DNA from: Thalia democratica
Lineage: Eukaryota
DNA: 64,000 nt
Direction of reading: 5' to 3'
Assembly: GCA_965202585.1 (NCBI GenBank)
Contig: OZ241833.1
Coordinates: forward strand, 47,554,001 to 47,618,000
Shown here piece after piece: positions 16,856-63,940 of this stretch; position 1 is the stretch's first letter, and every line of letters begins with the position of its first letter. The translations under genes and the position numbers were made by a program. The notes under the pieces were generated by a model. That model was not told the DNA's origin. It did no database searches and saw nothing but the letters and a program-made list of their open reading frames with translations.

Positions 16856-16998
16856 CTATGTCAAGGTGACCTTGAAGTATATTTTTATATTTTAGGAGAC
16901 TTAAGACTGTCAACAACAACTTCAAAAGATTTATTTTTAAAGCTTTTTGAAAAAAGAAAATGCATTGCGTACTTAAAGTTGAAAGTTATGGTATACTA

Positions 16999-19746: not shown

Positions 19747-20262
19747 AACTCGGGTTGATTTTGATCGGGTGGATTTTGAACCGGGTGGATTTTGAACCGG
19801 TTGGAGTTTGATCGGGTGGATTTTGACTCGGGTTGATTTTGATCGGGTTGATTTTAATCGGGTGGATTTTGAACCGGGTTAATTTTGAACGGGTGGATTT
19901 TGAACGGGTGGATTTTGACTCGGGTGGATTTTGACTCGGGTTGATTTTGATCGGGTTGATTTTAACCGGGTGGATTTTGAACCGGGTTGATTTTGATCGG
20001 GTGGATTTTGAACCGGGTTGATTTTGAACGGGTGGATTTTGACTCGGGTGGATTTTGACTCGGATGGATTTTGATCGGGTGGATTTTGACCCGGGTGGAT
20101 TTTGATCGGGTGGATTTTGAACCGGGTAGATTTTGATCGGGTGGATTTTGACCCGGGTGGATTTTGATCGGGTGGATTTTGACTCGGGTGGATTTTGATA
20201 GGGTGGATTTTGATCGGGTGGATTTTGATCGCGGGTGGATTTTGATTGCGGGTGGATTTTGA
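19747..20262 (-). repeat. Right arm tandem array of (T/AC)CGGGTGGATTTTGA, inverted relative to the left arm
   Basis: Seen directly; exact reverse complement of the left-arm unit. Confidence 0.95.
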
Positions 20263-25587: not shown

Positions 25588-26816
25588 TCAGTCGTCCTTG
25601 GACGATTCCTTGTTGTACTTTGTCATCAGGTTTTCCCACTCAGGCAGCAGGTAATCGGCGAAAATCTCGTTGTCGACTTTGTACGCGTTCAACTCGCTTG
25701 CCAAAATCGCTCCTAAAAGTTTTAAAAATACTTGGATGAACGGTATTTTTTAACAATATGTATATTTAATAGCATTCAGTTCGTCTTTAAGAGTTAAATG
25801 TATCGAAAATAGGCTGTATTTAAATATTGTATAATAATAGGAGGAAACAAATAAAAGACAAATCTTTTATCAATACAATCGACTAGATTTTAAAAATATT
25901 TTTGTAAACCTTTTTTTTCAAACTCAAATAATTTTTTACAATACAATTATAGCAATGGTGTTATTTTTTTTCAGAAACATCTAAATTTTTTTTTTTAATA
26001 AACTGAATTGAAAGTATTAAGGTACCTAAAGTCTTAAAACTTTTTTAATTTTTATTTTCTACACTAAAAAACCTTAGTCGTAGGTTGGTTGCATACAAAG
26101 AATAGAAGTTTGTAATAAAAATATTAAACTAAATACACAAAAAAATAAGTTAATTCCAAACCTTTAGTCTTAGGTTGGTTGCATACAAAGAACAGGCATC
26201 CGTTGTAATCCACGTGCAGCTGCAATGTGACGTCACAATGAGGTCTGACGACCTCTAGTGGACATCTTTCAGGTTGGGGAGTCAAGTCGAGTTCGGTGGA
26301 CAGTTGGATCTGGTATTTGACGAAGGACACCGCCCATACGTTGAATGTTTGCAATCTATTAGAAATAGAAAAATACCTTGTAAATAGTTTTGTTTAACTT
26401 TGTTTCAATTAAGTTAAATTAGGGCGATGTCGCCAAATTTGGGGCTGTCAAGTAACCAGTAAGGCGGCAAAAAAGTAACCAACTAGATATCTAATAAAGA
26501 AGGCGAATAATTTTAAACTTCAAATTTTTCTCAAGAAATATAAATCTCTCCTTTAGTTTAATAATTCTTAATTACAATTTCAAAAGTGTAATGTTATTTT
26601 CGATCATGGATCTAACTAATCTGTAAAAATTTTGAAAAACTTTAAGTAATTTTTATTTTTTACTAGTAAGTTATTAAGTGAAACATTTTAGAGTGTAGTT
26701 ATACATATCTCTGTAATTAATTATTATACTTTACCTCCACTTATTGTATTGTTCTCTCCATTTGTTATTTTCATCATTTTCTGTGTACTCTACCATGTTT
26801 CTTGCGTTCGGATCAA
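25588..26816 (-). CDS. Last three exons of the giant gene: WAT-like helix, 4-Cys antistasin-like module, second WAT-like helix, stop
   Basis: Spliced translation: FDPNARNMVEYTENDENNKWREQYNKWRLQTFNVWAVSFVKYQIQLSTELDLTPQPERCPLEVVRPHCDVTLQLHVDYNGCLFFVCNQPKTKGAILASELNAYKVDNEIFADYLLPEWENLMTKYNKESSKDD*. Confidence 0.85.
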
Positions 26817-29800
26817 CTTTAAAAAAACAAACATGTTGAAAACTTTATTTCTGCATACGAAAATAAGTGCACGTATAATTTACATTGAAAAACTATTATG
26901 ATCTATAAGCAAGCAAACTGTAAAACAACAATAAAATAAAACTTACAAAAAATCTAACATACAGTTGAAAACTTGTATTTAATATTTTTATTTACGTTTT
27001 TGCTTATTTTTAATAAACTCACAGTCGATGGTGCTGACTTGTTTTTCTGCTCTCTTTGTGACCATTCCGTTAGTTCTAGCAACCAAATTGAAGTTGTACT
27101 CTTGTTCTGAAATAAAAAGCATAAGTTTTTGTTTTAGTTTTATGATGGTAGATAGCTAGCGTTCTAAAGTATTTGCCAAGATTCTGCAACATACTTTCTT
27201 AAAAGTAATTTAAACTTTAGTATGTTTGTTTCATGGATGTTGATAAATTCTTAAGTTTTGGTATTAAATAGATACAAACACAGTATACACTTTAACAAGA
27301 AAATTTTGGTGTATGTTGGTATAAACAAGCTTATGTTACTACTATTTGTAAAAATAAGTATAATCATTTACCAGGTTTGAGGTCATAGAAACAAGCGAAC
27401 GTGAAAGGTCCTTGCATGGCGTTCAATGTTTGGAAGTCGTCGGAAAATCCTTCGTATGAGTTCAAACTTGCTCTGTCCATGGATACTGTGAACGATTCTT
27501 TGGCGTTCTGAAAATAAATTTGTATCTAAAATTTTTCAAAAATATTCACGTAAATTAAAGAAAAACAATCAGAAGACTACACAAAGTATACTTGTGCAAA
27601 ATACTAAAAGTAATTTACTAAATAGTATACTTTAAAACCAAGTATTAAACTTAATAAAAAAAAAACCTTTTTGTTTCTGATTCTAACACACGCAGTTTCA
27701 TCATCTACTCTAATGATTTCAAAATCATCTGTAAAAAGTTTGTTACTTATCACTAGTTTGTTACTTATATTACTTATGTTCAAACCAAATGTTTTGTTAT
27801 ATTAGCCACGACTTAATGATTTCTAAGTTATTCGACGTTTATTTACATTTCTTGGAAAATAATAACTAAGTTTTTAAATGAAATCCATATAAGTTTCAGG
27901 ATTAGAAGTTGTTAATAATTTTCTAGTGTATAAAATATTGTGAATCAATGTTTCAAAGCATTCCGAAAACTTGTGTAAAATACATAATACCTACCAGCTT
28001 CAGTTGCAAATGATATTTTTTCTTCAATAAAAGTTCCATCCATAAATGCTACTTTAATTGAAGCAGTGAAGTTTGTGCCTGAGAAAAGTTTTTTTATTTT
28101 TAAGAACTTTTTATATACGAAAATCATTTTAAATAAAATAATTTGGTAAAATTTTAACGCATAATAAAGTTATCATCAAATATTTAACTTGTTATATCTC
28201 ACAAGTTATATAAATATACAGCTGGAAAAGATAAAGACTAAAATATATACTAGTTGACGTTTCCATAAAATGTATCAATAAAATAAACTTGATTAAATTT
28301 GCTTTCTTTGTAACTAAACAATAACTGACTTTACTTTCAAATTTTTTCTACTTTAACTAGTACAAGTGTTTAGATTACAAAACACTTTAACAAGTAACAC
28401 AACTCACTAAAGATTATTATAATTTATACTTTGCAGCATTGTTACCATATAGTGACACTTCAACATTATTTTTAAAAATTTTATTGAAAATACTTTATAT
28501 TTACACAAATGTTATTTTTTTAAAACTTTTTAACAATATCGTTACGCAATATTGACCGCATTAATTACATTTTCGTGAAAATATTTCAGTACTTCCGATT
28601 GCGCAAGACAGTTTTTTAATATAAGAGTTTTTTGAATGCCTAAACTTACCGCTTTAACCAGTAGCTGTACTACCGCTCGACATTGAAAGTTTAAAAAAGT
28701 AATATAAAAAGAGTTTAAAGTTGTTCAAACTTAAATAGCCTAAGCTAAAATTGAAATGATTAATACTTGATAATGTTTATATGAAAACCAACATATATTA
28801 AGTAAAAATGAACACAAAGTAAAAATGTTAAACATTTATTCTCTGAAGACTTTAATGTAGAAATTTTTACCTGTTATAAATTTTTACTACGCAAACACAT
28901 AGCAAATAGTAGAATGCTATTTTACAGTTATCCTTGTTTAACTTTATAAATAAAAACAAAAAACTTCAAATATTTCATCCTAACAAATTCTAATACCAAC
29001 CGGAAGCAAGAGGTCCGAGTTTGACGGGGGTCACCCTTCCCACCCTAGCAACCGTGATGACGTTCGGTTGCGTGGCAACTGAGCTGAACAACGCCACCTG
29101 GAACGTTGTGGCCGAACCCTCGGGCGTGGTGACCATCAGTTCCGCTTCGCTGGTTTCCACCCTAGTGATTTCAACTGTGACGTCATCGTATGAGTACGAG
29201 GAAGTAGTTTCCGGTTCGATGGTGGTTTGGGCCATGGTTGTCATTTCTATTTGTAGAAAACAAAATATATATTATTCTATTTATAATAATCAAGTGCGCT
29301 CGTTATAATTTTCGCTGGATGCAAATTGTTATTTTTTGAACCTTAAATCATAAAAGAAAACCATGACCGTAATACTTTGCGAAACAAAACTAATAGTAAT
29401 CATTGTAAGAACTTTATAAAAAAGGTTGATAACATAATGATATGTAATATAAAGTATCATTTACAAAGCAAGCACTTCAAAATATATCAATAAAACATCA
29501 TAATACCTGGATCAAATTCAGTAGTGAAGTTCTGGATGACTGTCATTGAAGTTTTATCAAACTTGTTTGCTACCAATACGACACGGTACCTTGACCCTTT
29601 GAACAAACAAAAATGAATTAGTAACAACTTTAAATTTGAACAAACGTAAACTGAAATTTCTTTAAATTAAAGTTTAACCTTAAAATGCAAAGCTGAACTT
29701 AGTTATCAAAAAATTACTTCAATTTTTTTCGTCAGTACCTTTTACAAAAAATATTTAGAGTGACTTTATAAAGTTGTCTTAGTAAGTAGTAAACTTCTTT

Positions 29801-32800
29801 GTTAAATAGCTTCAGTAAAATCAAGCTAACCATAAGTATAATTGATAAAAGTTTTTAGTGAAAATAGTAAAAATTGGGTTTTTGTATCACATCAAAATAA
29901 GTACTATTATACAATTATTTTGAGACATTTCTTTACATACATAAATTGCTGTATTTGATTAAAAACTCTTAAAACATTTATATATTTTCTAATAATTTTA
30001 CACAAACCATGATTTAGAGGCCTCAACTCGAAGGTGGTTACTTCGTCCCTCCTTCTGAAGCTCATCTTGTTCGGTTGAGGGTTTTCCCCCTTGTACAAGA
30101 ACAAATCGAAATGGTCCACGCGATCGTCGCTGACAGCCAATAAGGTTGCTTCATTCATTCCAATGTTGACAACGCGCATGGAGAACTGAATTTTTATCAA
30201 AAGTTTTCGATAAACTTTAAGACATACTTTATTAACAATAACAATTACGATTCAAATTATACAGTTTTAAATAATTTAGAATAAAACAAAACCAAATATA
30301 GTGGATAGCCTGATCGAGTTAAAAGTTTTCTTGTCATTTTCAATAGCTTTGTTTTTAGATTGCTCAATAAAACTTTGCCAGAATAAGCTAAAGTTTCTGA
30401 TGGTTTTTCAAAATTTTCATTTACAAAAATTATCTTCTTAGAAATTTACGACAACTTTATAGTTCTTGTCAGCTGAAAGAAATCTGCACATCTAAGTGTA
30501 AATTTAAAACTTTCAAACTTTGACTTACTCAATTTATGATCAGTATTAAAACTTGGCGAATATAATCTTAAGTTATTTACAAGCTTAAAATGGTTTTTCA
30601 AAAATTTTATTTTATGAACTAACTTCTTAGAAATTCACTCAACTTTTTAGTTCTTATAAGCTTCTTTTGTTTTAGAAATTAAATGTAAACTTAAAACTTT
30701 CAAATTTTTGAAATCTCAATTAATTATCAATATTAAGTTAGAATCAATACTAAAAAATCATTAAGAGAGCTTGATAAATTTCGTCGATTTCAGCATTTAA
30801 AAAAATGCAAATTTACAAACAAACTTAAACCTCGATCTCTGCAACTTGAGTTGTTGGTTGCACAGTAGTGACGTCATCTTCCTCAATTACGCCCTCAGTG
30901 GTGAAATTCAATTTTATTTGTTTTCTGCTGAAATCGGTGAAATACCCAACTATTTCAATTTCGTATGTTGTTCCTGAATTGACGTTAATAGTTATTGATA
31001 TTGACGTCTTTAAACTAAAAATAGTTTTACTTTTTCGGTTTGAAAATAACATAGCTGCATAGAAATGATTATCTGATTAAGTTATCTAACAATTGGTACA
31101 TTCTCGAAGTTCGACTTAAACAATGACTAGGAATACTATAAGCTGTCATAAAATATTTATTTTTTACATTGTTTAAGAGAAACTAAAATTATTTCCCACC
31201 AGATTTTAGTTGCGAGATTGTCTTGTCAACGAAGTTCTGTCCCTGCAACATCCTCACTCTCTCCGGTCGGGGGAAAGCCCTCATGGGATCATCTATGACG
31301 TCATAGACGAACATTTCAACCCTGGTGACGTCACTTCCGCCGAATATCATCAGGTCCGCGTCGTTTTCTCCAACACCGGTGACGTCGACGAAGAATCTGA
31401 GCAAATAAAATTGTTGATTATTAGAGAACAATAATGTATTGGAAACATAATTGAAATCACTCAGTGTTAAACTGTTTAGCACTTTGTTGCACACCAGTAT
31501 TAAGAGTTCGAAGTTGTTTTATGTATAGAAAATTTTACAATTTTACAAAATGTTTAATATTGATCAGTATTTAAGTATAAATATTTTACTATCACTCTTG
31601 GTAATTAGATTGAATTAAAATCTAAAGAGTGTTTTTTTTGTTTAAGCTACCTGATATCCATCATGTTTGTAGTGACGTCATCAGGTGCATCAGTCACGCT
31701 TCGGTCCTTCAAAGTGGTGAACCTGGTTTCGGTTGTCATGGAAACCGACCTGTCGCTGAGGAGGCTTCTCACTTCAACAGTGTACTTCGTTCCTGAGTAA
31801 AAGTGAATAAAAAGGGTTACTTTTGCATAAACTCTAAATTAATTTTCGATTCTGATACGAAGCTTATCAAACAATATTTTTTTGTTTTACTCGTGACAGG
31901 CTGACAATAAAAAACTCTCATGTTTACCTTATAATTTACAAATACCATCTCACCTGCCGAAAGCGCGTCGAACAAAACCATTGTGACGTCACTGTCCCTC
32001 GTTACAAATCTCCTGTTGGGAAAGTAGCTGCTTTCTTCGAACAGCATGACGTCATATGTCATTACGTCATCGTCCGAGGAGAAAATGACAAGTCTGGCGC
32101 CATCTTGCGTCACTTCTGTTACCTGCACAGCCAACTGTCCGCTAGACGGCGTGGTTTGCGGTTGTTGAGTTGTTTGTGTGACGTCGTCGCCGTTTGTGAC
32201 AAAGTCGAGTTCTCTGACGTAGGTTTCGTCGCCCATGGCGTACACCTTCAGCTTATAGCTTGTTCCTGAAAATTTTTCGTTGATATAAGTTTAGTTTTAA
32301 CGAAAGCTTGTGCATGTGATAAATAATTATACGAAAGTAATAAGCTTATAATTGTGGGAAACTTTTTGTAAAAAATGCAGTAAAAGCTTGTTTTAACTAA
32401 ACTCTAAAAAAGAAATTTTCAAATTAAAAAAAATCCTAAAGCTACCTATAAAACTGTTTGCAGCTCGTCAAAATTAAGTTTCTTCATTCGTACTAATTTT
32501 TTAACTAAAAAAAACAACTCTCAAACCTGGCAATAGGGGTTCGAGGACGAACTGGCTGATCCTGCCCTGCCTTGGGAACATTGACTTCCTGATCACAACT
32601 GGGGAATCACCCAGATAGTACTCGAGTTGGAAACTGTCAAAATTTGCGGAGGAGTAGACTGCTAACAGGGCGGTTGATGAGGAAACGTTGAAAATGAAGG
32701 GTTCGAACAGTTGGAGGAGTTGGGTTGTTGTGGATTGTGTTGTAGTGGGTTCTTGAGCTGTTGATAGATGTCATTGTTAACAGTTAAATAACTATGTAGC

Positions 32801-35800
32801 TAACAAAAATTTGTCAATTTAGAATTGTTATTTCTTATTATACTTTTATCAATCGATTAGTCAAGAATTGTAGATCTGTAGATAGTTTTAAAAAGATTAC
32901 AACAGATAGCTTTGTAAGTATCTAGAAACAACTTTTTACACTAATTCAGAAGTATATTCAATTACAAACTAGTAGGTCTTGTGGTTTGTTGCCTGGTCGT
33001 TTCCTGCTGAGTGTACATGGCTTGTTTTGATTCGAATGACGAGCTCTCCTTGCTCATAAACACGCTTCCGTCTTTCAAGTAAGCTCGCACGAATATCGTG
33101 TACCGGGAACCTGTTACAATGTGAGGTTTAGTTAAGATGTTCTTTTTTAGTTTTGTGCTAATATTATTGGATATACAAAATTAAACTTTAGTACTCAAAT
33201 AATTCTTTAAAATTTAAGTTTTGGTCTTATCTAAATAACAGTTTATAGTTCATCAAAAAATTTTTATAAATCTAACTTACTTAAATAAACTTCATAAATA
33301 CTTATTTCAACAAAAAATACGTTTTCTACATAGAATTGACAATAATATTATTTAATTAACTAGCTTTTGATATAATGTTACATTATGGCTTATTTTGAGT
33401 AAACTGTTGATTATACATTAGCTAGGTAAAGAAAAAAATGTTATAAAAAAGTTATTAAATACTTATTCAATTTAATGATTTATAAGCATATTTAAACAAT
33501 ATTGTTACAAAAGCTCTCAAGTAGTTGACAAAATATTTTAATAAAAAACCATTTCTACCGGATGTTTACACAAAAGTTGATATTTAAAACTCATTAAATT
33601 TGTGGTAAACGACACAAACTTTAGCAAAACTTTTCATGTATTTTGAAATTTGGTGTACCTATAATTTGTACTTAATTACATAAAACACCGCATATAAAAG
33701 TCTCTAGGCAATATAAAACTCTTTAACGAGAATTTAAACTATGCGTTGGTATTTTTGCAGATTTTATATTCTCTTAAACTTTAACAACTTTTTTTTCTAC
33801 TTTGCTTTACTTAAATTTTTTTCGACTGTTTCTTCAAAAATAAAACGTTACGATTTTAAATTTTGCTAGATTATATAAAGTGGTAACTTTTTTACGTGTT
33901 TTTATTATTAAAGTGCGATCTTTAATTTTTTATGAAGTATAGTTGTTATAAAAAATAATTGTAAAATTTTTTAATAAATTCAAAAGTAAAACCCAAATGT
34001 CTAATTTAAGCCTCTTATGAATTTAGTTACAACTATAACTTTGTTTGAATTCTAAAATCTAATGGGTTTTTTTTAATTACCTAAACCAAACAATTTACAA
34101 ATACTACATAAGTTTTGGTTCAAGAAACAAACAAGCTTAATCGATACTTAAACTACAAAAATGACACTTCAAAAGGCAAAATTACTAATATGTTACTTAA
34201 TTAAAATATCATTTTTTCAACTAAAAAAACATAATTAAATATCTAAAATCTTGTTTTGAATTAAACAGTAATATGTATATATATATATATATAGTTTACT
34301 CACCAGGTCTCAATGGAGAAAGTGTCTTTTTAACGACAGGAGCCACCCTCCTGTACGACGTGACGCTCGGCACGGTGACGTCATCTTTGTACAGCATGAC
34401 GTCAAACGACGTGACGTCATCGGAAGTGAACACGACGACGTCGGCTTCCTCTGACGCGACCCTCATCACTTGGACGGTGATCATTTTGGTGGATTGCTGG
34501 GTCGATGGGGTGATTGTGACCGGTGCAGTGGTCGGTTCGGTTTCTTCTGTTGAAAAAATTGGTTTTGTTAGATCGTATTTTGAGGTTTGTTTTCTTATAA
34601 CTTTTTTTTCAGCTTTTTATAAAAGCTTTGTTTTTTAGTTTATGTCAAATAACATCTTAAAAACATTGTTAAAATAACAAACATATTTCTACCTGCTTCT
34701 GAGGTCTCGAAAAATTGCTGTCTTGAAACAGAAGTTCCATCAACCATTAAAGCTCTAACCATCACTCTGTAGTTGGTACCTAAAATGAGAATCATTTTAG
34801 TATATTGTCGTGTCATATAGCTGTAGTTACTAACTATAACATTTAACACTTATTAATGGTGTAAGTTTTATTTTTAAGTTGGCTATTTTTAAAATATTAT
34901 CTTTTGATATCTAAACAACAAATAAAATAATATTGAACAACTAGGTAATCTTGCTGAAGTCTTTTTCATAGGACAAAAACTTATTGTTTTAAATGTAATT
35001 TGGTGTCTATTATAGACATTATAGAACTTTAAAATTTTTAAGGTAGTAGTTTTCTAAAAAATTAAGTAAATAAATCCAATCTACTGTTAATTTTCAACCT
35101 GATTCAAGCGGTTCCACGGTTGCCATGGTAACAGCCCCTGTCCTTGGCAAGTAGACCACGTGGGGTACCGAAGAGTTGTGGTACAGTTGGACCTCGTACA
35201 TTTGAACCTTGTTTCCTCCCATGAATGCCATCTCGAAACTGCCGAAATTCAAAAGTTGAGTACTTAAAGAAAATAAAAAAAGTAAAGAATTAGAGATATT
35301 TGAACCTATCAGTTTTCGTATTATAAGAACTATCTGAAAATTTGTTATAAATTAAGACAATGAAAAATTTACAATAATTATGATTACAAGTAAACTATGT
35401 AAAGAGACGTATGAAAACATTTTCTAGTTTTCCTACCAAAAAAAAAACTGAACCATTATCAAACCTGGACTCGCTAGCTCTGGTCACCTTGAAGTCGAAT
35501 ATGCCCTCCAATCCGTCTTCAGAGGTGGTAATTTCGACGCTTGGTGTCGTGAATGAGTCGGGTGTTTCGGTTGTCATGACAACCTGACTTCCGGTGGGGA
35601 AGTTTTCGAAAACGGTGCCATCAAGTGACTTCTGGTCATCAGTTCCTGAAAATCGAGATGAATTGTTTTATTTAAACAAAATTGATTTTTGATTCATAGC
35701 TGTGATTTGTAGTTATCAAAACTTAATATATGTTTGTTTAACTAGACTTCATCGAGTTGTTCATCAAGAAAAAGTAATTTATTTAGTTTGAAATTTTTTA

Positions 35801-50800: not shown

Positions 50801-53800
50801 AATAATTTAAGTTATGAAAATTCTAGCAAAACAAAAAGTCCAATTGAAATCCTTTGAGCATTAAGTTTTTACCGTGTAAAAGTTTATTATGATATTAAGA
50901 ATTTTTTCGTGAAAACAAAGCAATTATAAATTAAGGTAAAGTTACTAACAATTTTCTAGATAAAAGCAAAAGCTTCACTGAAGTGTTTGCGATTGACTAA
51001 GTAGCATTTTACGCAACATACACCATTTATTATTATTTATTATTAAACTTTCTGACAACATTTATTCAACTAAATAATAAAAGTTCTCTGAATACCAACC
51101 GCTGATCAGGGGGCTCATCTTCAAAGTCGTGACGTCACCGACCTTGTCGAACTCCTGGAACTGCATTTCTCCTCCCATCCTGACCTCAACCCTGTATGAC
51201 GTCACGCTCGAGCTGCTCTCGATCCTCACTTCGGCCGAGTTCTCCGTGAGATTTGTGACGTCAGCGCTGACGTAAACAAACTCTCTTTTGGTTGTGACGT
51301 CATCGGGTTCGGTTGTCGCGTCGTCATCGCTGACAGTCGAAGTGAAGTCTGTTGTTGAGACGTCGAAACCATTGTTGTCTGTCGTGACGTCAAATTCTGT
51401 TGTGACGTCAGACTCTGTTGTCGCCGTCGCTTCGGTGGTGAAGTTCCTTCTTTCGCCTTTGTTGTTTTGTAAAATCATAAAGTATACAGTTTGTATATTG
51501 TTATTTAAAATTTTAGTTTTTATTTTATAAAAACATCTTAAGACAACGGATAAAACTAAATAAATTTAATTCCAAAAGTTTTTAAAATCTTTATAACTGT
51601 GAGTAATTTTTTCACAATTTAATAAGTTACCTTCAGTACTGAAAGAAATCTCTGCAAGTTTCAAACCATCTCCGTCTTTGTCATTTCCAATTATAATTGC
51701 GGTATAATCGGTTCCTGTTAATAAAAAAAGTCTTTATGATTCGCCAGCTAGAAATTTTTACATCGTATAAGCTTATTATAACCTTTTTTTAAAGATGATT
51801 TTTAACATTTTAATATCCTCATTTATGGAAGAAAGAATTAAATAAACGAAAAAATTAAGTCATATTACGTTTAAAGCGCAATTCAAAATCAAGAAAGCAC
51901 CATATATTAGAAAAATACTTTGTAAGATAACTTTGGTAATGCCTTTACGGCTGGGTTATATTAAAATAAAAACTTAAAACAAAAATATATTAACAATTCA
52001 CCCAAAACTTCAACAAGACTTAATCAAACTATCTTGAAAAAATGAAAACATTACAGAGAAAAACATCTAATCAAGAAAATTGTACTATTTATTTAAATTT
52101 TTTCTAAAACTCACAGATACCGTTATAATATCCGAAAGTAACATAAATTTAAAAAATAATTCCCCTAACCTGAAACAAGCGGTTGCAGCAACACCACGGT
52201 GGGCCGGTTGTCGTTCACGCTGGTGAAATTCTGGTCCCCGCCCCGGTCGTTCAGCAGGTTGACCTGGAACTCACGTATGTCCTCACTGCCGAATATCAGC
52301 AGCAGGGCCGCGTTGGGCTGTACCATGGAAACCTGGACGTACATCTCGGTGGTTGCCATGGAATCCGGCTCGTCGGTGGTGGGTGTGGTGGGTTGCGTCG
52401 TCACAGGTTTCACTCCTGGGGATTTTTTTATTGGTATAATTAAGAAGCTATAGTTTTGTAAATTTCAATTAATTTAACTACTTGGATTCTTTTGAACTTG
52501 ATGTTTTCATATTTATTTGTTAAATAAGGGTTTGTTTTTACAGACTTAAAGATTTTTTGTTAAAAATAAAAGTATATTTTCAATGGGTTAGAGATTTAGT
52601 TTTCAATTTTAAAATTTCTACTTTAGTAAAAAAACTTGTACGGATATATGTGACACTGTTTAATTTAACTTTTTTACTTAAGTATATTTGTTAAAGTTAA
52701 CCTTTTGTTTTGAAGTTTACAATCTGTCTTGCGACCTCTTTACCGTAAAATCCGAAATCTACGTCGTCGTAAGCAAGTACTTCGATAGAGTAGTTTGTTC
52801 CTAAACAATAAAAAATAAATGTTAGTAATTGAGTAATTCAATAGATTAGTTTGTTCCTTAACAATATAAAATAAATCATTAGTAATTGATTACTTCGATA
52901 GAGTAGTGTGTTCCTATATAATAAAGAATAAATTAATTATAATTGATTGATTCAATATAGTAGTATATTGCTGAAAAATTAAAATTTAAACATAAGCAAA
53001 TATGATCATTTATGGAAATATATTTGCGTATGTTATTTTTTCAAGTAAAGTGTGTGCTACCATTCTGAAGCACTTTATTGTAAACTATTTGTTGTACTCA
53101 ATTGTTTGAAGCACTATATTACCACTATAAGTTCTACAAAAAGACTATAAAATATCATATAATACTCTACTAATCGAATTATTGATAACAAATTTACTCT
53201 ATTGTTATTGTTAACTAAGTAATATATTTAAACCTGAACCAAAATACTAAAACGATATTATAACCAATTCATACCTGGTTGCAGCGGAGGCAGTTTGCTA
53301 GTTATGACGTCACTGTACTTCGAAACCTGCCTTACCATTGGTTCCTTAACACCCTCTATGTAGAACCTGACCAGGAAGCTCTTTACATTCCTACCTGACA
53401 ATATGAAGAAGTCGGCATCGTTTTCCCTGATGTTGTCAATTTTTACTAATATGGAGTTGTCTTCGGACGGTTGAGTTGTTTGCGGGACATTTGTGGTGGG
53501 TTTCGGCGCTTCGGTCGTTTTTACCGGTTTGACACCTGCAAAAGTTAGTAGATTAAAAAAACATTATTCACTTCTTTTTGTAATTAATGTTTATATGTTT
53601 CTGAGTTTGTTTTCTAAGCTCAGGTTACTTTAATGTCCTAAAGTGTGATACTTTCTATAAAATCTTTTAAGTTTTTACAACGTCAAAGAAATAAACGAAT
53701 AAGTACCCATGGTAACGAAGCTGACCCATTCTTTGGAGACTACTTTACCGTTCATACCATAATTTACATCATCGAACCCAAAAACTTGAACGGTGTAGTT

Positions 53801-56800
53801 TGTCCCTGTTTAAAAAATGCTTTAAGATACTGTTACGTGAATAACACAGTTTTAAAATAAAAACATAAAAGTAAATTGAGTAAAACTAAATTTATCGAAA
53901 GTTTTATAAATAAAAACAAAGTTAGTCGTAACGATTAGTATTTCTTAAGCAAAAATAATTATTGCAATGCAAAAAAAGTTTATGAAAAAGAAAACTAAAA
54001 TAATTAAAAAATACTTCAAAATCATTTAAAACCAGTTCAAAAATAAATTTTAATCAGGTGCAGAGGGTTATTAGTTGTTATAAAAAATAAAAAAAAACAA
54101 TTTTTACCAGGTTACAAAGGTTTATTAGTTGTTTAAAAAAACAAAAAAAAAAAGATTTTAACCAGGTTGCAGGGGTTTATTGGTTATTAAAAATTTTTAC
54201 CAAGTTGCAGAGGTTTATTAGTTATTAAAAAATAAATATAAATTGTAACCAGGTTGCAGAAGTTTATTAGTTAATAAAAAAAAAAAAATTACCAGGTTGC
54301 AGGGGTTCAATTATCTTCATACCGCTCGCCTCACTCGTCTTCTCGACCCTCATCACTTGCGGCATCGTGCTGTCCTCACTATAAACGTACAGCTCGTAGC
54401 TCTTCACCAATTGTGACGACACGATCATCACGTCCGCGGACGTGTGGTCCACTCGCGTCATGTACGGGATCATGGAGTAGTTCGGCTTCTCGGTCCGCTC
54501 TGTGGTTGGGAGGGGGGTGGTGAAGTCGATCATCATCTCTTGAGTGGTTGCTGACACGTCTGCGTTTATTATTGTGGAAATTAAGTAAAAATAAATTAGT
54601 TTTTTTTCTTTAACTTGTAAAAGGTTATGTGCTTCGACGTATATTTGTTTGCTTTTTTGTCCATAAGTAAACGAAAGTTTACTGATATTGAGAATTATTT
54701 TTTTAAATCTTTTAAATGATGATCTAAACTTAAACTGCTTTTTTTGTTCTCTTCTCGTTTGTATCAATATATGCATGCAACATATTGAGTGGTGGCGGAC
54801 ACGTCTGGATTGTTGTAAGGTTTAAGTGAGAATAATTTAGTGCTTTAGCTTATAAACATGGTTCTATGCTTTGACGTATAATAATTTGTTTTGTTTTCCT
54901 ATTCAGTATACAAAGGTATACTGTTATTGAGAATTTGTGTGTACTTTGTTTTATAAAGTCACTAATGGTCTTGTTTTTTAGTTTAATGGTATTGTTGTAT
55001 CTTATAAGCTTCGTATTACTTTGATTGAAAAGCATTTTGAAAAATGCTTGTATAAGTGAAATTAATTATGATTTATTAATGCAATCTTACCTTCCTTAGC
55101 GGTGAACCTGATTGTTTTCATTGCGATTTCGTTTCCGTTCTGCTTCAACTCGTCATTCGCGAAAACAGTCACAAAGTACTTCACGCCTGAAAATAATTCA
55201 GTTCGTTTAATTTCAATAACAATAATTAATAATTTAAAACATAAGTTTTATTATTATTAATATTAACAACAATAATAAAAAACTAAAAAAAAAGGCACAA
55301 AATAACCTTTTCTAATCTATAACCACCTAAAATCTTAAAAAGTTAAATGAACTATGCTAACATACACGCTGAACTTTGCTTAAAAAACGGCAGCAAGCAA
55401 AAACACGATAAATTAACCTGGCGTGGCGATATCGATCTTGACGATTGTGACGTCACTCATCTTGTCCATTGTGATCGACTCCCCGTAATCGGTGAAGCTT
55501 GACACGGAAATTTCAAAGCTCCTGACCGACTCCCCGGCCAGTATGAGCATCTCGGCGCTTTGCGATCCCACGTTGACCATCCTGAGCTGGAGGAAGTCTC
55601 CGGGGATGGTTGAGGTCGGCGGTCGCACGGTCGGTGACGACGTTCCCAATACCGGGTCTGTGAAGTTGTGATGTTTTTTGATCAATTAAAAAACAAGTTA
55701 TCTTTAGATATATTGGGCAGGATAAAGTTTTATTTTTTGTTTAATTTGATTGCTGTTGTCTATATATTTTTGTTACACAGTCATATCGTATGCTAATACA
55801 CTAGTTATAAAAAAAATATAAATAAATATATTTGTTAGTCTGCATGTTTTTACTTCATTTGGTGTAATTTAAGATTTTATTTTGTTACTATACAACTATA
55901 CCTACCATTCGTTTGGAATTGCACAGAGTACTCATCTACGAAATCTCTCAAGTCGTTGACGTAACCACGTACAACTAATAGAAAATTGGTGGCTGAAAAA
56001 AAAGTTTAATATTTGTACGGGAACATTTTGCTGTTTCAATAGCGTTTCAGAATCTATCACGTATATTACAACTCAACTCTAAATTGCATTTAAGTTTTAA
56101 AGTTTTTTTACAAACTCAAATTAGTCTAGATACCAACTTTATAAACCGTCAATAAAAGTTACGCAAAAACTATCTAAAAACTTTTTTATTTGTTTTCATT
56201 TTTTTGATTGAATATTGTTACAATGCTTGCATGCAGCTTGTTTCGAAAAAGAATTTCGAAAAAAGCTGTCTTTGAAACAAAATACAGTTTCTATCCTGAA
56301 GTATCACATATAGTTTTGCTACACCAACCTGCGTCAAGAGGCTCAACTTTGTAGTAAGTGACTTCTCCGATGCGGGGAACCACCTTCTTTTGCGGGTACT
56401 CGCTATCGCCCTTGTAGATCAGCACCTGGTACTCCTGGTAAGTCTCCCCTCCCAATATGAGGATGTCAACGCTGTTCTCTTTGACCATTTCCACCTGGCG
56501 GTAGGAAAATTAAATTTGTTAAGAAGATTCCGTATGGAAGTTGTTATTATTTCGACCTAGATATACGGAAAGTGAGTTTGGTCAGAAGTATTTCAGGGTA
56601 GTTGTTAATATAATTGCATTAATTAATTCATGTAAGAAGTCTAAAGACAGTGTGTTGGAAAAATGTAGTCTAAAGTAAAGAAGCAATAGAAATTTTAAAC
56701 AATGGTGTGTTTTACGCATAGTTGAAGCTAGATTTTAGATTATTATAGAACCAAACGCAAAATTCACGGCTTTTCAAACCTGTACTCTGAGATGCTCAGC

Positions 56801-59800
56801 CTTTTCGGTTGTTGCTCCAGTTTGAGTTTTCATAGTTGTCTCTGGTGATTCTGTTTTAAAATAGTTAGTCATTTACTAAATTTTTATGCTTTTATTTTAA
56901 ATTTAATATTTTATGTGTCTCAACGAAGCGTATGTGTTTAATGTTTTTCTGTAAAAAACGACAAAGTTTTAAGAAATTTAAAATACAGTGTTTTTAATTA
57001 TTATGTATGTTAAACTACTTTAGCTTATTTAGTTTATTCAAGAATCTTGTTTTATAAAGTTTAAACATACAAAACTTTAAACAAAGAATTAAACGAACCA
57101 TCAAATTTTAATGTGTTGAATTCAACAGTTAATCTCAAAAGTTCGCCCTCTTTGGTTCTAGCTTCAACGGAAACCATGTAGAATGTATCTGAAATATTTT
57201 ACTTGTAAATATATATATATATATATATATGTGTTCCCGAGAACACAGCTTTTTTAAGTCAGGTAAGATATTTAGAGAGATGATTGAGATTTAAAAATTT
57301 TGATATAAATATACTATTGAACTTAGATGTAGTATATATAATTTATTTTAAAGTTTAAATGCAGTTTATATAAAAAATTAAAACCAATAAAACATTTTTA
57401 TCTGAAATATTATACCAGTTTTTACATAAATAGCCGCACAGGTATTTCTACCAAAACAAATTTCTGTTATGGCTCATAATTAAGTAATTATAAAAACACT
57501 TTTTGTAATAGTTATCGAACAAAAATAGTATGAATTAAAACCATTTGTTTACTACTTTAATATATATACTTCTGCATTAATTACGAAATATAAGTATAAT
57601 AGAAACTACTTTTACTGAGCTTGTTCAGTACAACACTATAATACCATGTTAAAATCTACCACAGAAAAGCCCATTACTATACACTCAATTAGATAAATAT
57701 GTATAAAAAAAAATTTTCCAACCTTTTTTGAGCTCATACAGTATGAGACTTTATTATCACAATTAAAGAAAATATCTTTACTATAAACGCAAATAAATAA
57801 ATGTATATATAAATTGTTAAATCCATCAAACCTTTTTTCAGTTCGTTCAATATGAGCTTCATCACCTCCTCTTTCCTGTCGAAACTCATCTCCAGCACTT
57901 TCTCCCTTCCCCCCTCCAACACCTCCAGCTTCATGGTTGTGACGTCATCGGGTGACGTGATGGCCAACACCACTTCCTCCGATTGCACGTTCATCACCTG
58001 AGCTTTAAATGTTCTCATCTGCCTGGTCACTGTAATGGTCTGGTAAAAAAATGTTTGTTAATAACACTTTAAATAAAATGTTTTAATATTTAAATTCGGT
58101 TTTTGTTTGCGCTTTGAAAGTTTTTAGTTTTGAGTTACTTTGGTAGTCTGTGTAGAAAATTCGTTTTAATTTTAATAACAATTTGTATATTGATCTAGGA
58201 TGTTTTATCGTATTTGTTTTTTGTCGTTTATGGTTGTATTGTTTGTGTTCAAGCTGCTTTAAGTCATTTATGTTTATCAACATAATTGACGATGTTAACG
58301 ACAAGTAGAGGTTTAACTTTGTCGGTCTAGTAAAGAAAAGCTTATAAACATAAGATATATAACAAGCTGAGTTTATTTTTTTCACGTAAAAACTAACTTC
58401 TTCTGTGGTGGACCTTTCAGGGCATTCATCGGAAGTGATGCACCTTCCATCATGCAGGACCGGCTTGTCATCGGGACACTGGCACTTTGACACGAAGTTG
58501 AAGGTGCACGCGGGGTTGGGGACTTCGCAGGTGATCGTGCAAGCCGTGGCCTGGTTCGAATACACAACTCCCTCGTTCTCACAACCTAGAGAGTTGGTTT
58601 AATTTCAGTTTACTTTAAATTGGTTATTACTTTTCTTAGTGATCTAGTTATGAACATTTGATAAAAGTATTTCTTGCATTAATCAATTGGTTATTACTTT
58701 AACTCTTATTCCATTATAAATTATAAAAATCGAATTTTAGCCATTATAATTCAGTATGCTAGCATTTAAAACACGTAATGTTTGCCTTATGATCTATTAA
58801 AAATCAGTGTTTTGTATATTTATTTTTATATTTCTCAACTCTCACCTTCACAATTGGGTTCTACCCCGCTGAAAGACATGCTGTCAGGATAAGGAGTTCC
58901 TGTTTTCGGGTTGACGCACATGCACACTGTTCCAACCTGTAAATAGTAAATATATATATATTACTAAACAATACGGAGTTAGCATGCACACTGTTCCAAC
59001 CTTAAAAAATAAATTTTTACAACATTGTTTTTCAAAACTCAAATTTTTTTTATCACTATTGTAGTTTGTATGTTTGTATACGTTTATAAAGCTCGAGAAT
59101 TTACACAGAAATAATAAATGAGTAGCACAACAATATTTTGATTGTTAGTTGTTTATTTTATTACTTATTTCAATGTTACGCAAATAATTTCTACCTGCTG
59201 CGTTTGACCGCACTGTACAGCTTTGTAGTTTCCTGTTTCGTCACAGTCAGGAAGCGTCTGACCAGGTTGCAGGTCTTTACTGACTACGTCATATATTTGC
59301 TGGCACGTCATACCTGTAATCAACACATTATGTTATTAGATTTTATTTCATTGACTAGGTTGCAGGATTTTAGATTATATTTCTTATTTTACATTATTAG
59401 TTCGGGGTTTTCGCTAATTACGTCATATATTTACTGACACGTCATATCTGTTGAAGTGTTTTTTTTTGCGTATTTTTTACTATCAGTAATAATTTTAAAC
59501 TGATACATTGTTTGCTTTAGAAATATATATTTCAAGTCAGAATTTTCAGTCAGTCTGTTTTCTAAACACTTTTAGCTAAAATAAGTAGAAATTTGCTGTT
59601 ATTTAAACTCGTACAGATAATTGATCACCTATTTACATTTTAACATCAATATCAGATATTTTTATTAATTGAATAGTAAACTAAATGTATAAGTCATATA
59701 AATTTTTCTTAGAATCTAATTACAAAAATTAATCTACACTTTATTACAAAACAGCTTAGTATGTTAATTGTAAACAACTAAGTATAATTGATAATACGTA

Positions 59801-62800
59801 CTATCGGATTAAATAAACAAATACTTATTAATCATACTTTTGACTGGGTGTGCTCGGTTCAAATATGATTTGTTTTGCTATATTTCAGAAAAATTAGCTC
59901 TATATAGGTTGTTGCTAAAATACAATACTGTTACGTATAATTTTATAACAAACGTGTGTAACTGGTTACTGATAAAAATAGGCATAAATGAATAGTTATT
60001 TTTATTAAAAGGAGAGTTTAATTTTAATTTTTATAGGTTACAAACACCACTAATTATAAACTATATCTTAAAGGTTAAAACGCAACCACCCTTATTATAA
60101 ATTTATCGAAATTACTACACATGTTCTTAAAACTGGTTGGTACACATTTTAAAATGTAAAACTCTATCATAAAATGCTAAATTTTGAGTGATTTAATGAT
60201 ATTTTTCGTTCGCAATTACAATTTTTTTTATTAGAAGTTTAAATATGTGAAACTAACTTGATCCGACATTAGTTGTTTCATTTAATCCTTCCATAGATGT
60301 AGTTGAATCAAATGTAAACATATCTGGTAAAAAAAACTTCTTAATTGTGGGTGCATGAAACATTAGACTATTTTATAAAATAAAATTTATACTATTAAAC
60401 TGCTGTTTTTTTTAAACAATTAACATATAAAAGTAGATGAAAATTTTATATAACTATAAAAATATTCACTGTAAATAACATATCTACAACAAACACTTTT
60501 TAAAATATTGTTTAATATAAAGTTTTAAAGCAAACAACTTCCAAAATGATTCATAATCAGTATTCTTAAATTATTCATTTTCTACTTAAACTAAGGTGAG
60601 TAACCATAATATTATTAATACCCTTAAAGTTAAATATTTTCTTTTATACATATAATATATGGGTTTAAGTTTAAGTTTAAGTAAAAAAATTTAGACAATT
60701 TAAAGACTATTTATTTACCTTGAGTAAAGTCGGTTACCATTTTTGGAATCATTGTTGTTGTTTGAAGTTGCTTGTAAGCTTCATAAACGTCTATAAAAGT
60801 TTTAAAGTTATTGAAAAAACTAATGTTTTATAATACTTTTCATAAAAGTTTTACTAAAGAATGTTTTCATTAAGAAGCAATCAATTGTCACTGAAATTAT
60901 TATCTGATTGAAGAATATTTTGCTGAGCTTAAACCGGTCGTGTTATTTACTACGAATAAAACTAAAACAGTTTTTTAAGTTGAATAGTAAAGTTGCTACA
61001 TTAACTACAGTTTTGATGATTTTAAATGATGTTTGCATTATTATTTTATTTAAAAACATTTTTATAAAAACTTAATTACCTCACTTTAATTACTTATTTA
61101 ATTTACTGTAAGCTATACAAGGTTAGCTAAAATTGAGCAGTTTTTTATAAAACTGTCAATTATATAAGTATATATGTATATATGTATATATATATATATA
61201 TATATGTCAACTAAAAAACTCACCCTGGCAAGGAATGACCCTTCTGCTCCCGTATGGAGCTTCGGTGTTGGGAATCTCCCTCCCTGTGTTGATATCCACA
61301 CAAAAACAAGTTTGAGTGAACTGCAGGCACTGCTCGAATGCGAAAAGTCCATTGTCGTCGTTACATACGGGGTACTCCGGTCCGTCCATGGGTCGCTCGG
61401 GACTGGCGATGATCTTTCCGACCTCCATGAACTCACGCTGGCACTTGGTCAGGTCTGAAAAAAAAGTAAATTAATTTTAAAATTTAGTAAGACAGTTTCT
61501 GTCTAATTTGTATAGGTATAATTTTGTAATTTGCTTAGTTGGTTGCACTTAGTAAGGTATATGTAAAAACAATAACCCACTTGAAAAATCCAAACTTTTT
61601 TTAAAGCTAAGAAGTATTATAAACAAAAAACAGTGATCAGCAGCTGGAAACAACATTTGTGTACGTATTTAGTCATGTACTTATGTTTAATATATAGTTA
61701 TGAAAAAAGCATTGCGTAAGCTTCTCATCGTTGCAGCCTTTTTCTCAGTAACAGTTTATGGTTGTTAAAAGAAAAACTAGAATAAACAAATACGTATAAA
61801 CAAAATAAACTCACACAACATCTCCCCATTGCAGTCTTGTTCTGTGCCCTCAGTTCCTGGCACAGTGTCACCCAAGAAAGGCTCAACGCACCTACAAACA
61901 TTCAAGAAGGTAAAATATTTATGTTAACCATATTAATAAAAAAATACAATATTTTGGGTTATTTACTTTAACAAACAAAGTCCATACTAATTCTTAAAAA
62001 GTATACTTAAACTTGTAAACTAGTTAATGGTTCTACGCACCTGAAAACACCAGTAGATGTTATAATATTTATAATAAATATTATTGAGAAGTAGTATAAC
62101 TGATTTTAAGAATATTGATATTTCTTTTGTTATACATAGTGTATACTAACAAGAGCATTTTACAAAAATGATAAAACAGTAAGATCTGAACACGAACCTG
62201 CAAACGCCAGTAGTATTTACTACTGTTTGTAATATGTATCCAAACGTACTAATTAGTAATACTATTTGATAACTTTAATTTAGTTTTTATAAAATTCTGT
62301 ACATAAAAGCTTCAAACCTGCAAACACCAGTGGCGGGGTCGCACTGCTTGGCCTGGTAGTTTCCTGATGACGCGTCACACTTCCTCGCGAACATTATGTT
62401 GGTTCTGGCATCCACAAACTCCTTCTGGCAGTTTGTCAGGTCTGAAAAGGATGACGTAAAAGTTATACATTGTTGCCGTTATAAAAATATTCATAAACCC
62501 TTACATTGGTGATGGTGTAAAATTTTTTTGTCATTTATAGATATCTACAAACCTTAACACTCATAAAAACAGTAAGTTATAGAACCCTAATTAAAACATT
62601 CAAACCTTTTCTTAATTATACAACCAAAAACCTTTGTAATTACTATTTTAAAGAATTATAAAAAATAGTTTAGTATGTTGCCATTTAAATAAAAGCATAA
62701 TTCTTTTATTTTAATTAAAAAATATTTTAATCAGTCGCAAACCTTCGCAATCGTACCCAACTTGGTTTCTTTGGTGGGAAGTTCCCGGAATTTCAAGTCC

Positions 62801-63940
62801 CTCTGGAGTTACGCACCTACAAATGTAAAATTATTTAACACTTATACAATGAAACTTAATACTTATGTGCTGATGATTGTAGTGATAGGCTGCATAAAAC
62901 TTGTTTTTATGAATGTTCATTTTAAATAAAATATTTAAAGGCCCATCCAAGCGGGCTTAGGAAAAGTTTATTTTGTTGAATAAATCTTATATATACAACT
63001 GGTTTCAAAAAGTACACTTCAAACAAAAAACAGTACAATTATTTCATGTAGCGTGTTGCTACAATTTACAGCTATTTAAGTTTGAAAACTGGCACAGTGA
63101 AAATTGATTTAGTTAACCAAATCTAATTCTATTTTAACAAACAAATATGTATAGTTTATAAGTTATATTGGATATTGACTCCTGAACACGAATGGGGCTT
63201 TATTTCTACAATATAAAATAATATAATTTATATAAACAAATAAATATTAACCTGCACACGAATGGGGTGCACTGCCTGGGTTGGTAGCTGCCACTAGCGG
63301 TGCAGTTGGGCAGCATGTCGAACAAAGCCTGCCTGGTTTGTGGGTCCTGGATCTGGCTGAGTTGGCGCTCCAGCTCGCGTCTCTGGTCCGCACACAGGGG
63401 CTCGGTACGCGCTGTTATAATTGGTTATTCATAAACCAACTAGTGAGTAGCTAGTTAGTTTCGTTCAAGTGTATGGTTTATTCCCGACTTCGTTTAATTT
63501 ACTATGACTCTGCTGTGTTTTTATCACACTAGATAAAAGTTTACCGGAAGTTTTTAAATATTTAGTTAATAGATGCGTTTTTTTTTTTGTTTGCATTCTG
63601 TTTAGTATAGTGATATGTTTTATATAAAATAATTGATTACTGTTCAGCGTTATTTTTTGCGTTTGTAGTTAACTAGTCGTAACATTGTTTTCTTAAATAT
63701 AAAATCATGTAATACATTTAATTTATAATATTTTTACTATATCTACTTTTTTGTAATTAACAACACAAAGCTATAAAAATAAATGCGGTAACACATATAG
63801 TTCATCGATAAACAACAAACCTGGTTTTGTAGTTTCCACTGCTTGGGTTGTTTCTTCAGGTTTTGGTGTGGCTTCCCAAGTGATGATAGCCTCAGTGGCA
63901 AACTCAGTTGTCAGGATTGGCTTAACAGTGTTGTACAGTT
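25588..63940 (-). CDS. Giant multi-exon extracellular protein (5'-partial, ~4,330 aa): 4x thyroglobulin type-1, TIL-like, 26x FN3-like with mucin linkers, C-terminal WAT-like/antistasin-like tail
   Basis: 70 GT-AG exons give one open frame (12,989 nt) ending in TGA at 25590-25588: 63940-63821,63411-63252,62816-62743,62441-62318,61891-61815,61454-61224,60790-60719,60323-60258,59313-59195,58936-58846,58585-58398,58039-57832,57188-57099,56850-56780,56494-56329,55992-55906,55657-55418,55186-55091,54559-54293,53805-53707,53535-53275,52800-52702,52415-52170,51714-51631,51456-51100,50653-50567,50306-49719,49432-49337,49075-48855,48564-48513,48451-48371,48142-47753,47504-47265,46946-46866,46552-46079,45822-45742,45492-45229,44849-44478,44093-44010,43799-43506,43228-43142,42708-42475,42078-41998,41323-39875,39604-39353,39099-39022,38813-38562,38314-38234,37749-37555,37265-37182,35645-35465,35238-35099,34779-34693,34546-34304,33110-32970,32757-32527,32265-31954,31792-31651,31396-31200,30973-30831,30185-30008,29596-29507,29246-29001,28078-27995,27728-27667,27507-27372,27106-27023,26816-26735,26355-26162,25712-25588. 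58 of 69 introns are phase 1. Least certain boundaries: 51456, 35238 (in-frame alternative 35262) and 48855. Confidence 0.92.
27023..39604 (-). CDS. Giant gene, FN3-like repeats 16-26 with Thr-rich linkers
   Basis: Paired exons: the first ends L-x-[PS]-G, the second starts [TS]-x-Y-x-V-x-V and ends F-x-T (e.g. DLKP|EQEYNFNLVART, PLES|GTNYRVMVRALMVDG). Confidence 0.88.
39875..41323 (-). CDS. Giant gene, 1,449-bp mucin-like (Thr/Glu/Ser) exon
   Basis: Part of ORF 39795..41507. Acceptor AG at 41325-41324, donor GT at 39874-39873, phase 1 at both ends. Confidence 0.9.
41998..58039 (-). CDS. Giant gene, FN3-like repeats 1-15 with Thr-rich linkers (includes mucin exon 48142-47753)
   Basis: Same two-exon FN3-like unit repeated; ORF-track fragments 57734..58030, 55413..55685, 54267..54776, 52165..52413 etc. 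are these exons read into introns. Confidence 0.88.
52780..52975. repeat. Tandem ~55-bp repeat (about 4 units) containing the acceptor and start of exon 52800-52702
   Basis: (ac/aa)ttc(g/a)atag(a)(g/t)tagt.tgttcct...aataaa repeated. Confidence 0.8.
54050..54310. repeat. Tandem 40-60-bp repeat (6 units) containing the donor and end of exon 54559-54293
   Basis: accaggttgcag(g/a)ggttt attagtt...poly-A repeated. Confidence 0.85.
58398..58585 (-). CDS. Giant gene, TIL (trypsin-inhibitor-like) domain exon, 8-Cys variant
   Basis: CENEGVVYSNQATACTITCEVPNPACTFNFVSKCQCPDDKPVLHDGRCITSDECP: C-x3-C, C-x-C and C-x5-C spacing of TIL. Confidence 0.8.
58846..63411 (-). CDS. Giant gene, four thyroglobulin type-1 domains
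   Basis: Each has C...P-x-C...G-x-Y/F...QC...C-x-CV...G...C. Examples: LPNCTASGSYQPRQCTPFVCRCVTPEG, KCDASSGNYQAKQCDPATGVCRCVEPFLG, PVCNDDNGLFAFEQCLQFTQTCFCVDINTG, LPDCDETGNYKAVQCGQTQQVGTVCMCVNPKTG. Confidence 0.92.

Follow-up and report, generated by a model that had tools for sequence, protein, structure and literature searches.

Gene structure of the locus

The 64-kb stretch of DNA analysed here (G000:C9:47554001-47618000, hereafter the window; GC about 28%) comes from an 802-Mb tunicate assembly. Its minus strand carries the last 70 exons of what is probably a single very long gene of a tunicate that is itself probably pelagic, encoding a secreted, anchorless protein of about 5,520 residues for which a structural or adhesive extracellular role seems most likely. 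Even the stop-free segments of the minus strand were recognisable as coding for Tg1, TIL-like and recurring FN3-like peptides. The exons were chained by a Viterbi model run on the window together with 30 kb of upstream sequence, in which codon log-odds were trained on long open frames, introns were GT-AG, phase was tracked and position weight matrices were re-estimated twice. The model was built independently of an earlier one made from the letters alone (the sequence-only reading), and three corrections were made to it; a 7-nt micro-exon, the long form of exon 30831-31054 and two 5' exons of the first version were dropped on frame and repeat-homology checks.

The sequence-only reading had joined 70 exons into one frame of about 4,330 residues, and the same 70 exons were recovered by the splice-aware model, encoding 4,329 amino acids (25591-63940) with zero in-frame stops before a TGA at 25588-25590. 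It had also placed the N-terminus outside the window, where 24 more exons were indeed found on the same strand, extending about 23 kb past the window edge. The whole gene, as modelled, spans about 61.6 kb and comprises 94 exons with a coding sequence of 16,560 nt (5,520 amino acids), again free of in-frame stops. All 93 introns are GT-AG and 75 of them are in phase 1, with a median length of 318 nt and a maximum of 3.7 kb. The GC content of the exons is 47.2%, as compared to 24.1% in the introns. The features of the gene within the window, from the N-terminal to the C-terminal side, are listed below.

63821-63940, minus strand: first exon in the window, a Thr/Pro-rich linker between Tg1 domain 3 (outside the window) and Tg1 domain 4; from the model, with phase 1-1 and GT-AG borders
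62743-63411, minus strand: Tg1 domain 4, exons 63252-63411 and 62743-62816; Pfam Thyroglobulin_1, E 3.2e-6 for the first exon
61815-62441, minus strand: Tg1 domain 5, exons 62318-62441 and 61815-61891; Pfam Thyroglobulin_1, E 1.6e-4
61224-61454, minus strand: Tg1 domain 6, a single exon; Pfam Thyroglobulin_1, E 7e-10, profile positions 1-63 of 67
60258-60790, minus strand: two small Thr-rich linker exons, 60719-60790 and 60258-60323; from the model only, the least certain exons
58846-59313, minus strand: Tg1 domain 7, exons 59195-59313 and 58846-58936; Pfam Thyroglobulin_1, E 3.9e-6
58398-58585, minus strand: TIL-like eight-Cys module, a single exon; Pfam TIL, E 0.019 (below cut-off), and similarity to the upstream TIL
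49353-58006, minus strand: FN3 repeats 1-8 with Thr-rich linkers, the long ones in exons 51100-51456 and 49719-50306; repeat alignment and genome profile matches
41999-48977, minus strand: FN3 repeats 9-15 with long Ser/Thr/Pro linkers (exons 47753-48142 and 46079-46552); peptide fragments P0020, P0027, P0001 and P0002, RNA joints 43228/43506 and 43799/44010, and a loose end at 42078/42475
39875-41323, minus strand: mucin-like exon of 483 codons, rich in Thr, Ser and Glu, with four [IL]LWNL hydrophobic islands; RNA joint 39604/39875
27027-39527, minus strand: FN3 repeats 16-26; Pfam fn3 on P0003, junctions by P0003 and P0022, RNA joint 38314/38562
26735-26816, minus strand: 82-nt exon that starts the tail, phase 1 to 2, acidic, with Trp; from the model
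26162-26355, minus strand: four-Cys tail exon (C-x9-C-x12-C-x4-C) in an 89-codon open frame; from the model, AlphaFold pLDDT 62, beta
25588-25712, minus strand: last coding exon, 40 acidic/amphipathic residues, and the TGA at 25588-25590; read from the sequence

Transcription and splicing of an orthologue in ocean plankton

An orthologue of the gene is transcribed and spliced in ocean plankton, and the gene structure in the window agrees with these transcripts at about 19 junctions, six of them covered by RNA and 14 by peptides, with one common to both. The RNA comes from the one RNA run that contains part of the gene, a marine metatranscriptome (X1); three other runs that contain it are DNA, since their sequence also covers the introns. 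X1 contigs over 38200-44150 were 85-99% alike and were placed on the predicted exons. Six predicted junctions had X1 joints or loose ends exactly there. The RNA joints 38314/38562, 39604/39875, 43228/43506 and 43799/44010 are predicted introns, the last having been returned by the tool as 43800/44011 and shifted one place lower, as allowed by its 'both = 1'. Loose ends of X1 contigs matched the exon ends 42067-42078 (junction 42078/42475) and 43216-43228 exactly.

Spliced peptide fragments from Tara Oceans ('merc', ERR17... accessions), 52-71% identical to the model, crossed 14 junctions: three by P0020 and P0027, three by P0001 and P0002, four by P0003 and four by P0022. Zero contigs were returned when the Tara fragments were looked up by exact sequence. 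RNA and peptides together link the exons from 47753-48142 to 38234-38314 almost without a gap, and likewise those from 29507-29596 to 27372-27507. In DNA of a second species (X4), indel lengths add up to multiples of three within exons (15, 9 and 3 nt), whereas in the intron at 38956-38970 they do not. Splice validation, one of the checks that the sequence-only reading had proposed, was thus obtained for these junctions, but not for the boundary between the upstream head and the in-window part, the Tg1/TIL-to-FN3 transition and the last three exons.

Cysteine-rich head and predicted secretion

The exons upstream of the window encode, from N- to C-terminus, a likely signal peptide, CUB-MAM-LDLa-TIL-FN3-CUB-MAM and three Tg1 domains. 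Pfam recognised CUB, MAM, LDLa (3e-9), TIL (1.7e-7) and, over the whole gene, seven Tg1 domains; the two CUB-MAM pairs align collinearly (E 2e-12). The three upstream Tg1 domains scored 32-36 bits and the four in the window 21.5-38.6 bits (PF00086, cut-off 20.6; E 1.6e-4 to 7e-10 in the window), so that all four Tg1 domains named in the sequence-only reading pass. The Tg1 domains carry the conserved six-Cys pattern and a CWCV-type motif. The TIL module claimed for the window was harder to place. It has eight Cys as against the ten-Cys pattern, and its own Pfam score of 15.5 bits (PF01826, E 0.019) is under the cut-off of 24.5; however, it is clearly related to the TIL found upstream (37% identity, E 2e-6), which passes Pfam with 31.7 bits, and is supported as TIL-like. 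The domain order proposed earlier was incomplete, as it was missing the CUB-MAM-LDLa-TIL-FN3-CUB-MAM head and three Tg1 domains.

The upstream sequence, where a signal peptide was to be sought, gave a candidate exon at 87152-87218 (window-extended numbering), with a basic pair, a hydrophobic core, a small-residue cleavage motif and a phase-1 GTTAGT donor. No hydrophobic transmembrane stretch and no glycosylphosphatidylinositol-type end could be seen by eye in the translated model and the tail, no predictor being run, in agreement with the earlier statement that the end carries neither. Cysteines are concentrated in the head, with 82 in residues 1-1632, as compared to two in the 3,753-residue FN3 array and four in the 135-residue tail. 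These findings support the predicted product as a modular glycoprotein, secreted without an anchor, in which a disulfide-rich head is followed by a long rod of FN3 and mucin-like sequence.

FN3 rod and its mucin-like exon

The rod in the window is built of 26 two-exon repeats, each cut by a phase-1 intron within the motif P-G-T-x-Y (between G and T). Together with one unit upstream there are 27 FN3 units of about 85-90 residues, and their pairwise identity is 7-40%, with a mean of 21%. The repeats are without the strand-B Trp, and each is trailed by a Ser/Thr/Pro linker. A spliced orthologue of repeat 12, modelled by AlphaFold with alignment A2 (spliced fragments and window half-domains), gave seven strands at a predicted local distance difference test score (pLDDT) of 93.7. 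Among the first 50 Foldseek matches of this model in the PDB nearly all were FN3 domains or FN3-derived scaffolds, 22 of them at E <= 1e-3 and with template-modelling scores up to 0.75. The top two were a bacterial RsgI4 sensor domain; the nearest FN3 folds were titin Fn3-56, CD148 FN3-2, the tenascin-derived Tencon, collagen XX FN3 and fibronectin FN3-11.

Pfam fn3 (PF00041) passed its cut-off of 25 bits on the spliced orthologue of repeats 16-17 (P0003:110-297; 28.4 bits) and gave no match for the orthologues of repeats 10-12 and 25 nor for single window exons. The repeat profile also retrieved canonical FN3 proteins (P0040, P0014 and P0023) as distant matches. On this modelled fold and these matches, the 26 repeats are true FN3 domains. 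The count of 26 FN3-like repeats in the sequence-only reading was thereby upheld by the fold and by Pfam on one spliced orthologue, and the rod of FN3 domains with Thr-rich linkers that it had described fits both sequence and fold.

By composition, about 1,570 residues lie in Ser/Thr/Pro-rich, mucin-like stretches, and Thr makes up 14.8%; by analogy, the linkers would be densely O-glycosylated. The mucin-like exon matches no Pfam family. This 1,449-nt exon is included by the X1 joint 39604/39875, whereas a 9-nt loose end before 41998 is identical to 39596-39604, and some RNA therefore skips it. Since both introns flanking it, next to exons 41998-42078 and 39353-39604, are in phase 1, skipping keeps the frame, and 39875-41323 may be a cassette exon. 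X1 also shows an in-frame skip of 288 nt at 40848-41137, inside the mucin exon. The [IL]LWNL islands lie at 39960-41140, and the last of them is kept in the Tara fragment P0003 (ILWNLF) despite the diverged mucin around it.

C-terminal tail

The 82-nt exon 26735-26816 is the sole GT-AG exon that joins the frames of 27023-27106 and 26162-26355 without a stop. The resulting tail of 135 residues with four Cys has no Pfam, PDB or database homologue, and a genome search found exon 26162-26355 only in this gene and in near-identical copies on two other contigs (C702 and C643). AlphaFold on this exon alone, from a single sequence, gave a best model of pLDDT 62 (beta) and four others of 39-46, from which no usable fold can be taken. 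When the 82-nt exon is skipped, 27023-27106 joins 26355 in another frame, giving a Cys-containing tail of about 24 residues with a stop near 26265; as predicted from the sequence, this is a possible alternative C-terminus.

The label that the C-terminus had carried before, WAT/antistasin-like, was not borne out. For WAT (PF08674, AChE_tetra) there was no Pfam match at E <= 10 with the Trp-rich 48-residue segment or the last exon, the PDB matches at E <= 10 include no cholinesterase chain, the Trp spacing is 7 then 8, and the C-terminal half of the segment (within exon 26162-26355) was modelled, at low confidence, as beta and not helical. For antistasin (PF02822, six Cys in about 26 residues) there was no Pfam match either, and the tail exon has only four Cys, spaced 9, 12 and 4. 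Oligomerisation through a WAT-like helix is likewise left unsupported by these findings.

One gene or several

The preferred interpretation is a single gene, and several observations weigh against it. Transcript evidence, whether RNA or peptide, does not reach across from the upstream head to the part in the window, across the change from Tg1/TIL to FN3, or across the last three exons. Word-based homologue searches were made with three exons (TIL, first Tg1 and tail) and returned one genomic fragment each or none, leaving the domain transitions unbridged. With most exons in phase 1-1, an uninterrupted frame does little to prove that they belong to one gene. The exon for the signal peptide is predicted, and hydrophobic open frames are frequent in AT-rich DNA such as this. 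The lone RNA run, X1, stems from a relative or a divergent population and does not represent the animal that was sequenced. Above all, it is uncertain whether the head and the in-window exons are transcribed together, as we infer.

The strongest competing explanation takes the locus as two or more transcription units, such that the 5,520-residue chain is never made whole: for example as a CUB-MAM-LDLa-TIL gene upstream and a separate Tg1-FN3-mucin gene inside the window, as an operon whose transcript is divided by trans-splicing of a spliced leader, or through the use of alternative promoters. Operons and trans-splicing are known in tunicates. With nearly all exons in phase 1-1, any neighbours on the same strand would join in frame, and the boundaries between head and rod are crossed by no RNA or peptide fragment. 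We nevertheless regard this as unlikely. The exons lie on the same strand with ordinary intron spacing throughout, neither an in-frame stop nor a terminal-type exon occurs anywhere in the chain, a search for an internal start with a signal peptide gave none that was convincing, and the Tg1 array runs unbroken across the window edge.

Homologues, copies and lineage

The mitochondrial COX1 gene (contig C1833) contains 32 AGA/AGG codons. Many fall on glycines that are invariant, as in the motifs GGGDP and FFGHPEVY, and genetic code 13 alone gives a correct translation, which places the organism among the tunicates. Orthologous fragments in several Tara plankton samples fit a pelagic habit. This copy of COX1 is intact, and nuclear copies with many stops (nuclear mitochondrial insertions) lie on C4 at 56.84-56.94 Mb and on C757 (L018, L019).

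An FN3 profile made from 23 N-terminal repeat halves (alignment A1) matched 45 of 1.84 billion representative proteins at E <= 0.001, the close ones being short fragments from the same or related species, and a full-length homologue was not among them. Literature searches gave no named protein with the same domain order, in line with the earlier remark that the order was not recognised in any. As far as seen in these searches, the domain order is unreported and restricted to this tunicate lineage.

Diverged paralogues were considered and rejected: the remaining genomic matches of the repeat profile all represent this gene, as partial, near-identical or decayed copies, and are not family members with an architecture of their own. 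Just past the 3' end of the gene, pseudogene fragments lie on the plus strand as inverted copies of 43514-45385 (the exons and introns of FN3 repeats 12-14) at 15196-16853 and 22326-23134, 84-91% identical and with broken frames. A minus-strand "gene" modelled at 12116-22738 is probably spurious, being antisense to these decayed plus-strand copies of exons of the giant gene. The unplaced contig C702 (G000:C702:1-39513; L013-L016) holds three tandem copies of window 24325-31914, a segment with the last FN3 repeats, the tail and about 1.2 kb downstream. They recur with a period of about 16.6 kb and are 92-96% identical, with spacers of about 9.5 kb that are without evident coding sequence, and their tail exon is identical in protein; C643 is similar. 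These may be real tandem fragments or unresolved assembly. On contig C2, two mirror-image loci at 26109623-26123962 (minus) and 26157499-26171839 (plus) (L020-L022) hold scrambled, frame-broken exon copies mixed with transposon-like long open frames (374 and 261 aa).

Elsewhere in the window, a minisatellite-like tandem repeat at 16826-17721 (plus-strand frames KIHPIKIHP / QNPPDQNPP) coincides with a GC rise to 0.35 and a GC skew of -0.23. Two likely genes were recognised by eye on the plus strand: a 262-codon open frame at 2174-2959 resembling a kelch/beta-propeller repeat protein, and a RING finger (C3HC4-like) followed by a coiled-coil-like exon at 14158-14754.

Comparison with known proteins and possible role

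Like the FN3-array matrix proteins (tenascins, fibronectin, collagen XII/XX and titin segments), the predicted protein has tandem seven-strand sandwiches in an extensible rod. It differs in that its repeats are only 7-40% identical to one another, mostly escape Pfam fn3, do not have the strand-B Trp and are separated by Ser/Thr/Pro linkers, and none of those proteins is known to have the Tg1, CUB or MAM head found here. Zonadhesin and the MAM/LDLa/CUB mosaics (MAMDC4, MALRD1 and the enteropeptidase heavy chain) mix MAM, LDLa, CUB and TIL domains with a mucin-like stretch; unlike the present protein they are membrane-anchored or carry VWD or protease domains, and they are not known to have Tg1 or long FN3 arrays. 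Secreted and membrane mucins resemble it in their long Ser/Thr/Pro stretches; VWD/CTCK polymerising ends are absent here, the array and tail together having only six Cys. The layout of gel-forming mucins and VWF (VWD-C8-TIL and a cystine knot) was not found among the 94 exons, which were assigned to other modules by eye or, for selected exons, by Pfam, and two Cys in the array with four in the tail are too few for a cystine knot. The house proteins of Oikopleura (oikosins) also mix CUB, LDLa and mucin-like parts and have long Ser/Thr/Pro stretches, in a filter-feeding tunicate; an account of these proteins has no mention of an oikosin with Tg1 or FN3 (PMC3390340).

In the mechanism that we propose for the single-gene product, the chain would consist of a signal peptide, the Cys-rich head (CUB-MAM-LDLa-TIL-FN3-CUB-MAM, seven Tg1 and the TIL-like module), a nearly Cys-free rod of 26 divergent FN3 domains on Ser/Thr/Pro-rich linkers that include the 483-residue mucin exon, and the orphan tail. 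Once secreted and with its linkers O-glycosylated, it would form a hydrated bottle-brush filament of about 0.4-0.5 micrometres when fully stretched, if 27 FN3 domains of about 3.5 nm each and linkers of about 0.25 nm per residue are assumed. The FN3 domains would confer extensibility. Ca2+-dependent CUB, MAM and LDLa domains with the disulfide-rich Tg1/TIL array would provide a binding or cross-linking end, possibly also a protease-inhibiting one, and the tail cysteines may tether chains together. O-glycosylation, extension, Ca2+-dependent binding and protease inhibition are all suggested by the behaviour of such modules elsewhere, and the protease resistance put forward in the sequence-only reading would likewise follow from the names of the domains. 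The most likely role, by the same analogy, would be as a structural or adhesive part of an extracellular gel or matrix, for which the mucous filter, the tunic or an epithelial coat would be plausible in a filter-feeding tunicate.

The array could instead point to multivalent protease inhibition as the main job, with thyropin and TIL modules presented on a long stalk to shield the gut or a secreted matrix. The protein has seven Tg1 modules, a domain type by which thyropins block cysteine proteases, and two modules of the TIL type, which inhibits serine proteases. The thyropins (equistatin, saxiphilin and the Tg1 modules of testican/SMOC) share the Cys pattern, the CWCV-type motif and PF00086 with the domains found here, but they are either small proteins or limited to one to three of these domains. 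Many Tg1/TIL domains (in nidogen, SMOC, IGFBP, mucins and VWF) are non-inhibitors, and modules of the inhibitor type account for less than 15% of the chain, which leaves inhibition quite improbable as the main function.

In ascidians, a thyroglobulin (TG)-like signature has been defined as more than 2,000 aa, at least five Tg1 domains, N-terminal disulfides and a cysteine-free C-terminal region (PMC12992692). The present gene shows this signature, with 5,520 aa, seven Tg1 domains and two Cys in its FN3 array. Compared by description, ScTG-like of Styela clava (Sc.CG.S284.31) is likewise a giant secreted tunicate protein with a Tg1 array followed by a Cys-poor C-terminus; it has at least nine Tg1 domains, no FN3, mucin, CUB or MAM is described for it, and its hormonogenic role was shown by experiment (PMC12992692). 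That our gene encodes its pelagic counterpart, an iodinated scaffold secreted by the endostyle and yielding thyroid hormone from its tyrosines, would agree with the signature but is very improbable, as the signature is permissive, most of the protein is FN3 and mucin, which are unreported for ScTG-like, the likeness is one of description only, and no clear orthologue was found even in a close Styela species (PMC12992692). Equally remote is the version in which such an iodinated Tg1 array would sit on the mucin/FN3 filament of the feeding net and then be eaten.

The TG-like signature nevertheless makes the gene a candidate invertebrate thyroglobulin-like protein, and if the feeding-net version were true, filter feeding and thyroid-hormone supply would be joined in a single molecule. 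If it is merely another mosaic matrix protein, it would be ordinary. Its combination of modules, built almost entirely from phase-1 exons, is unreported. Much of the ocean's water is filtered by pelagic tunicates through nets of mucus, about whose proteins hardly anything is known, and the gene provides a concrete, transcribed and lineage-restricted candidate for pelagic-tunicate extracellular material.

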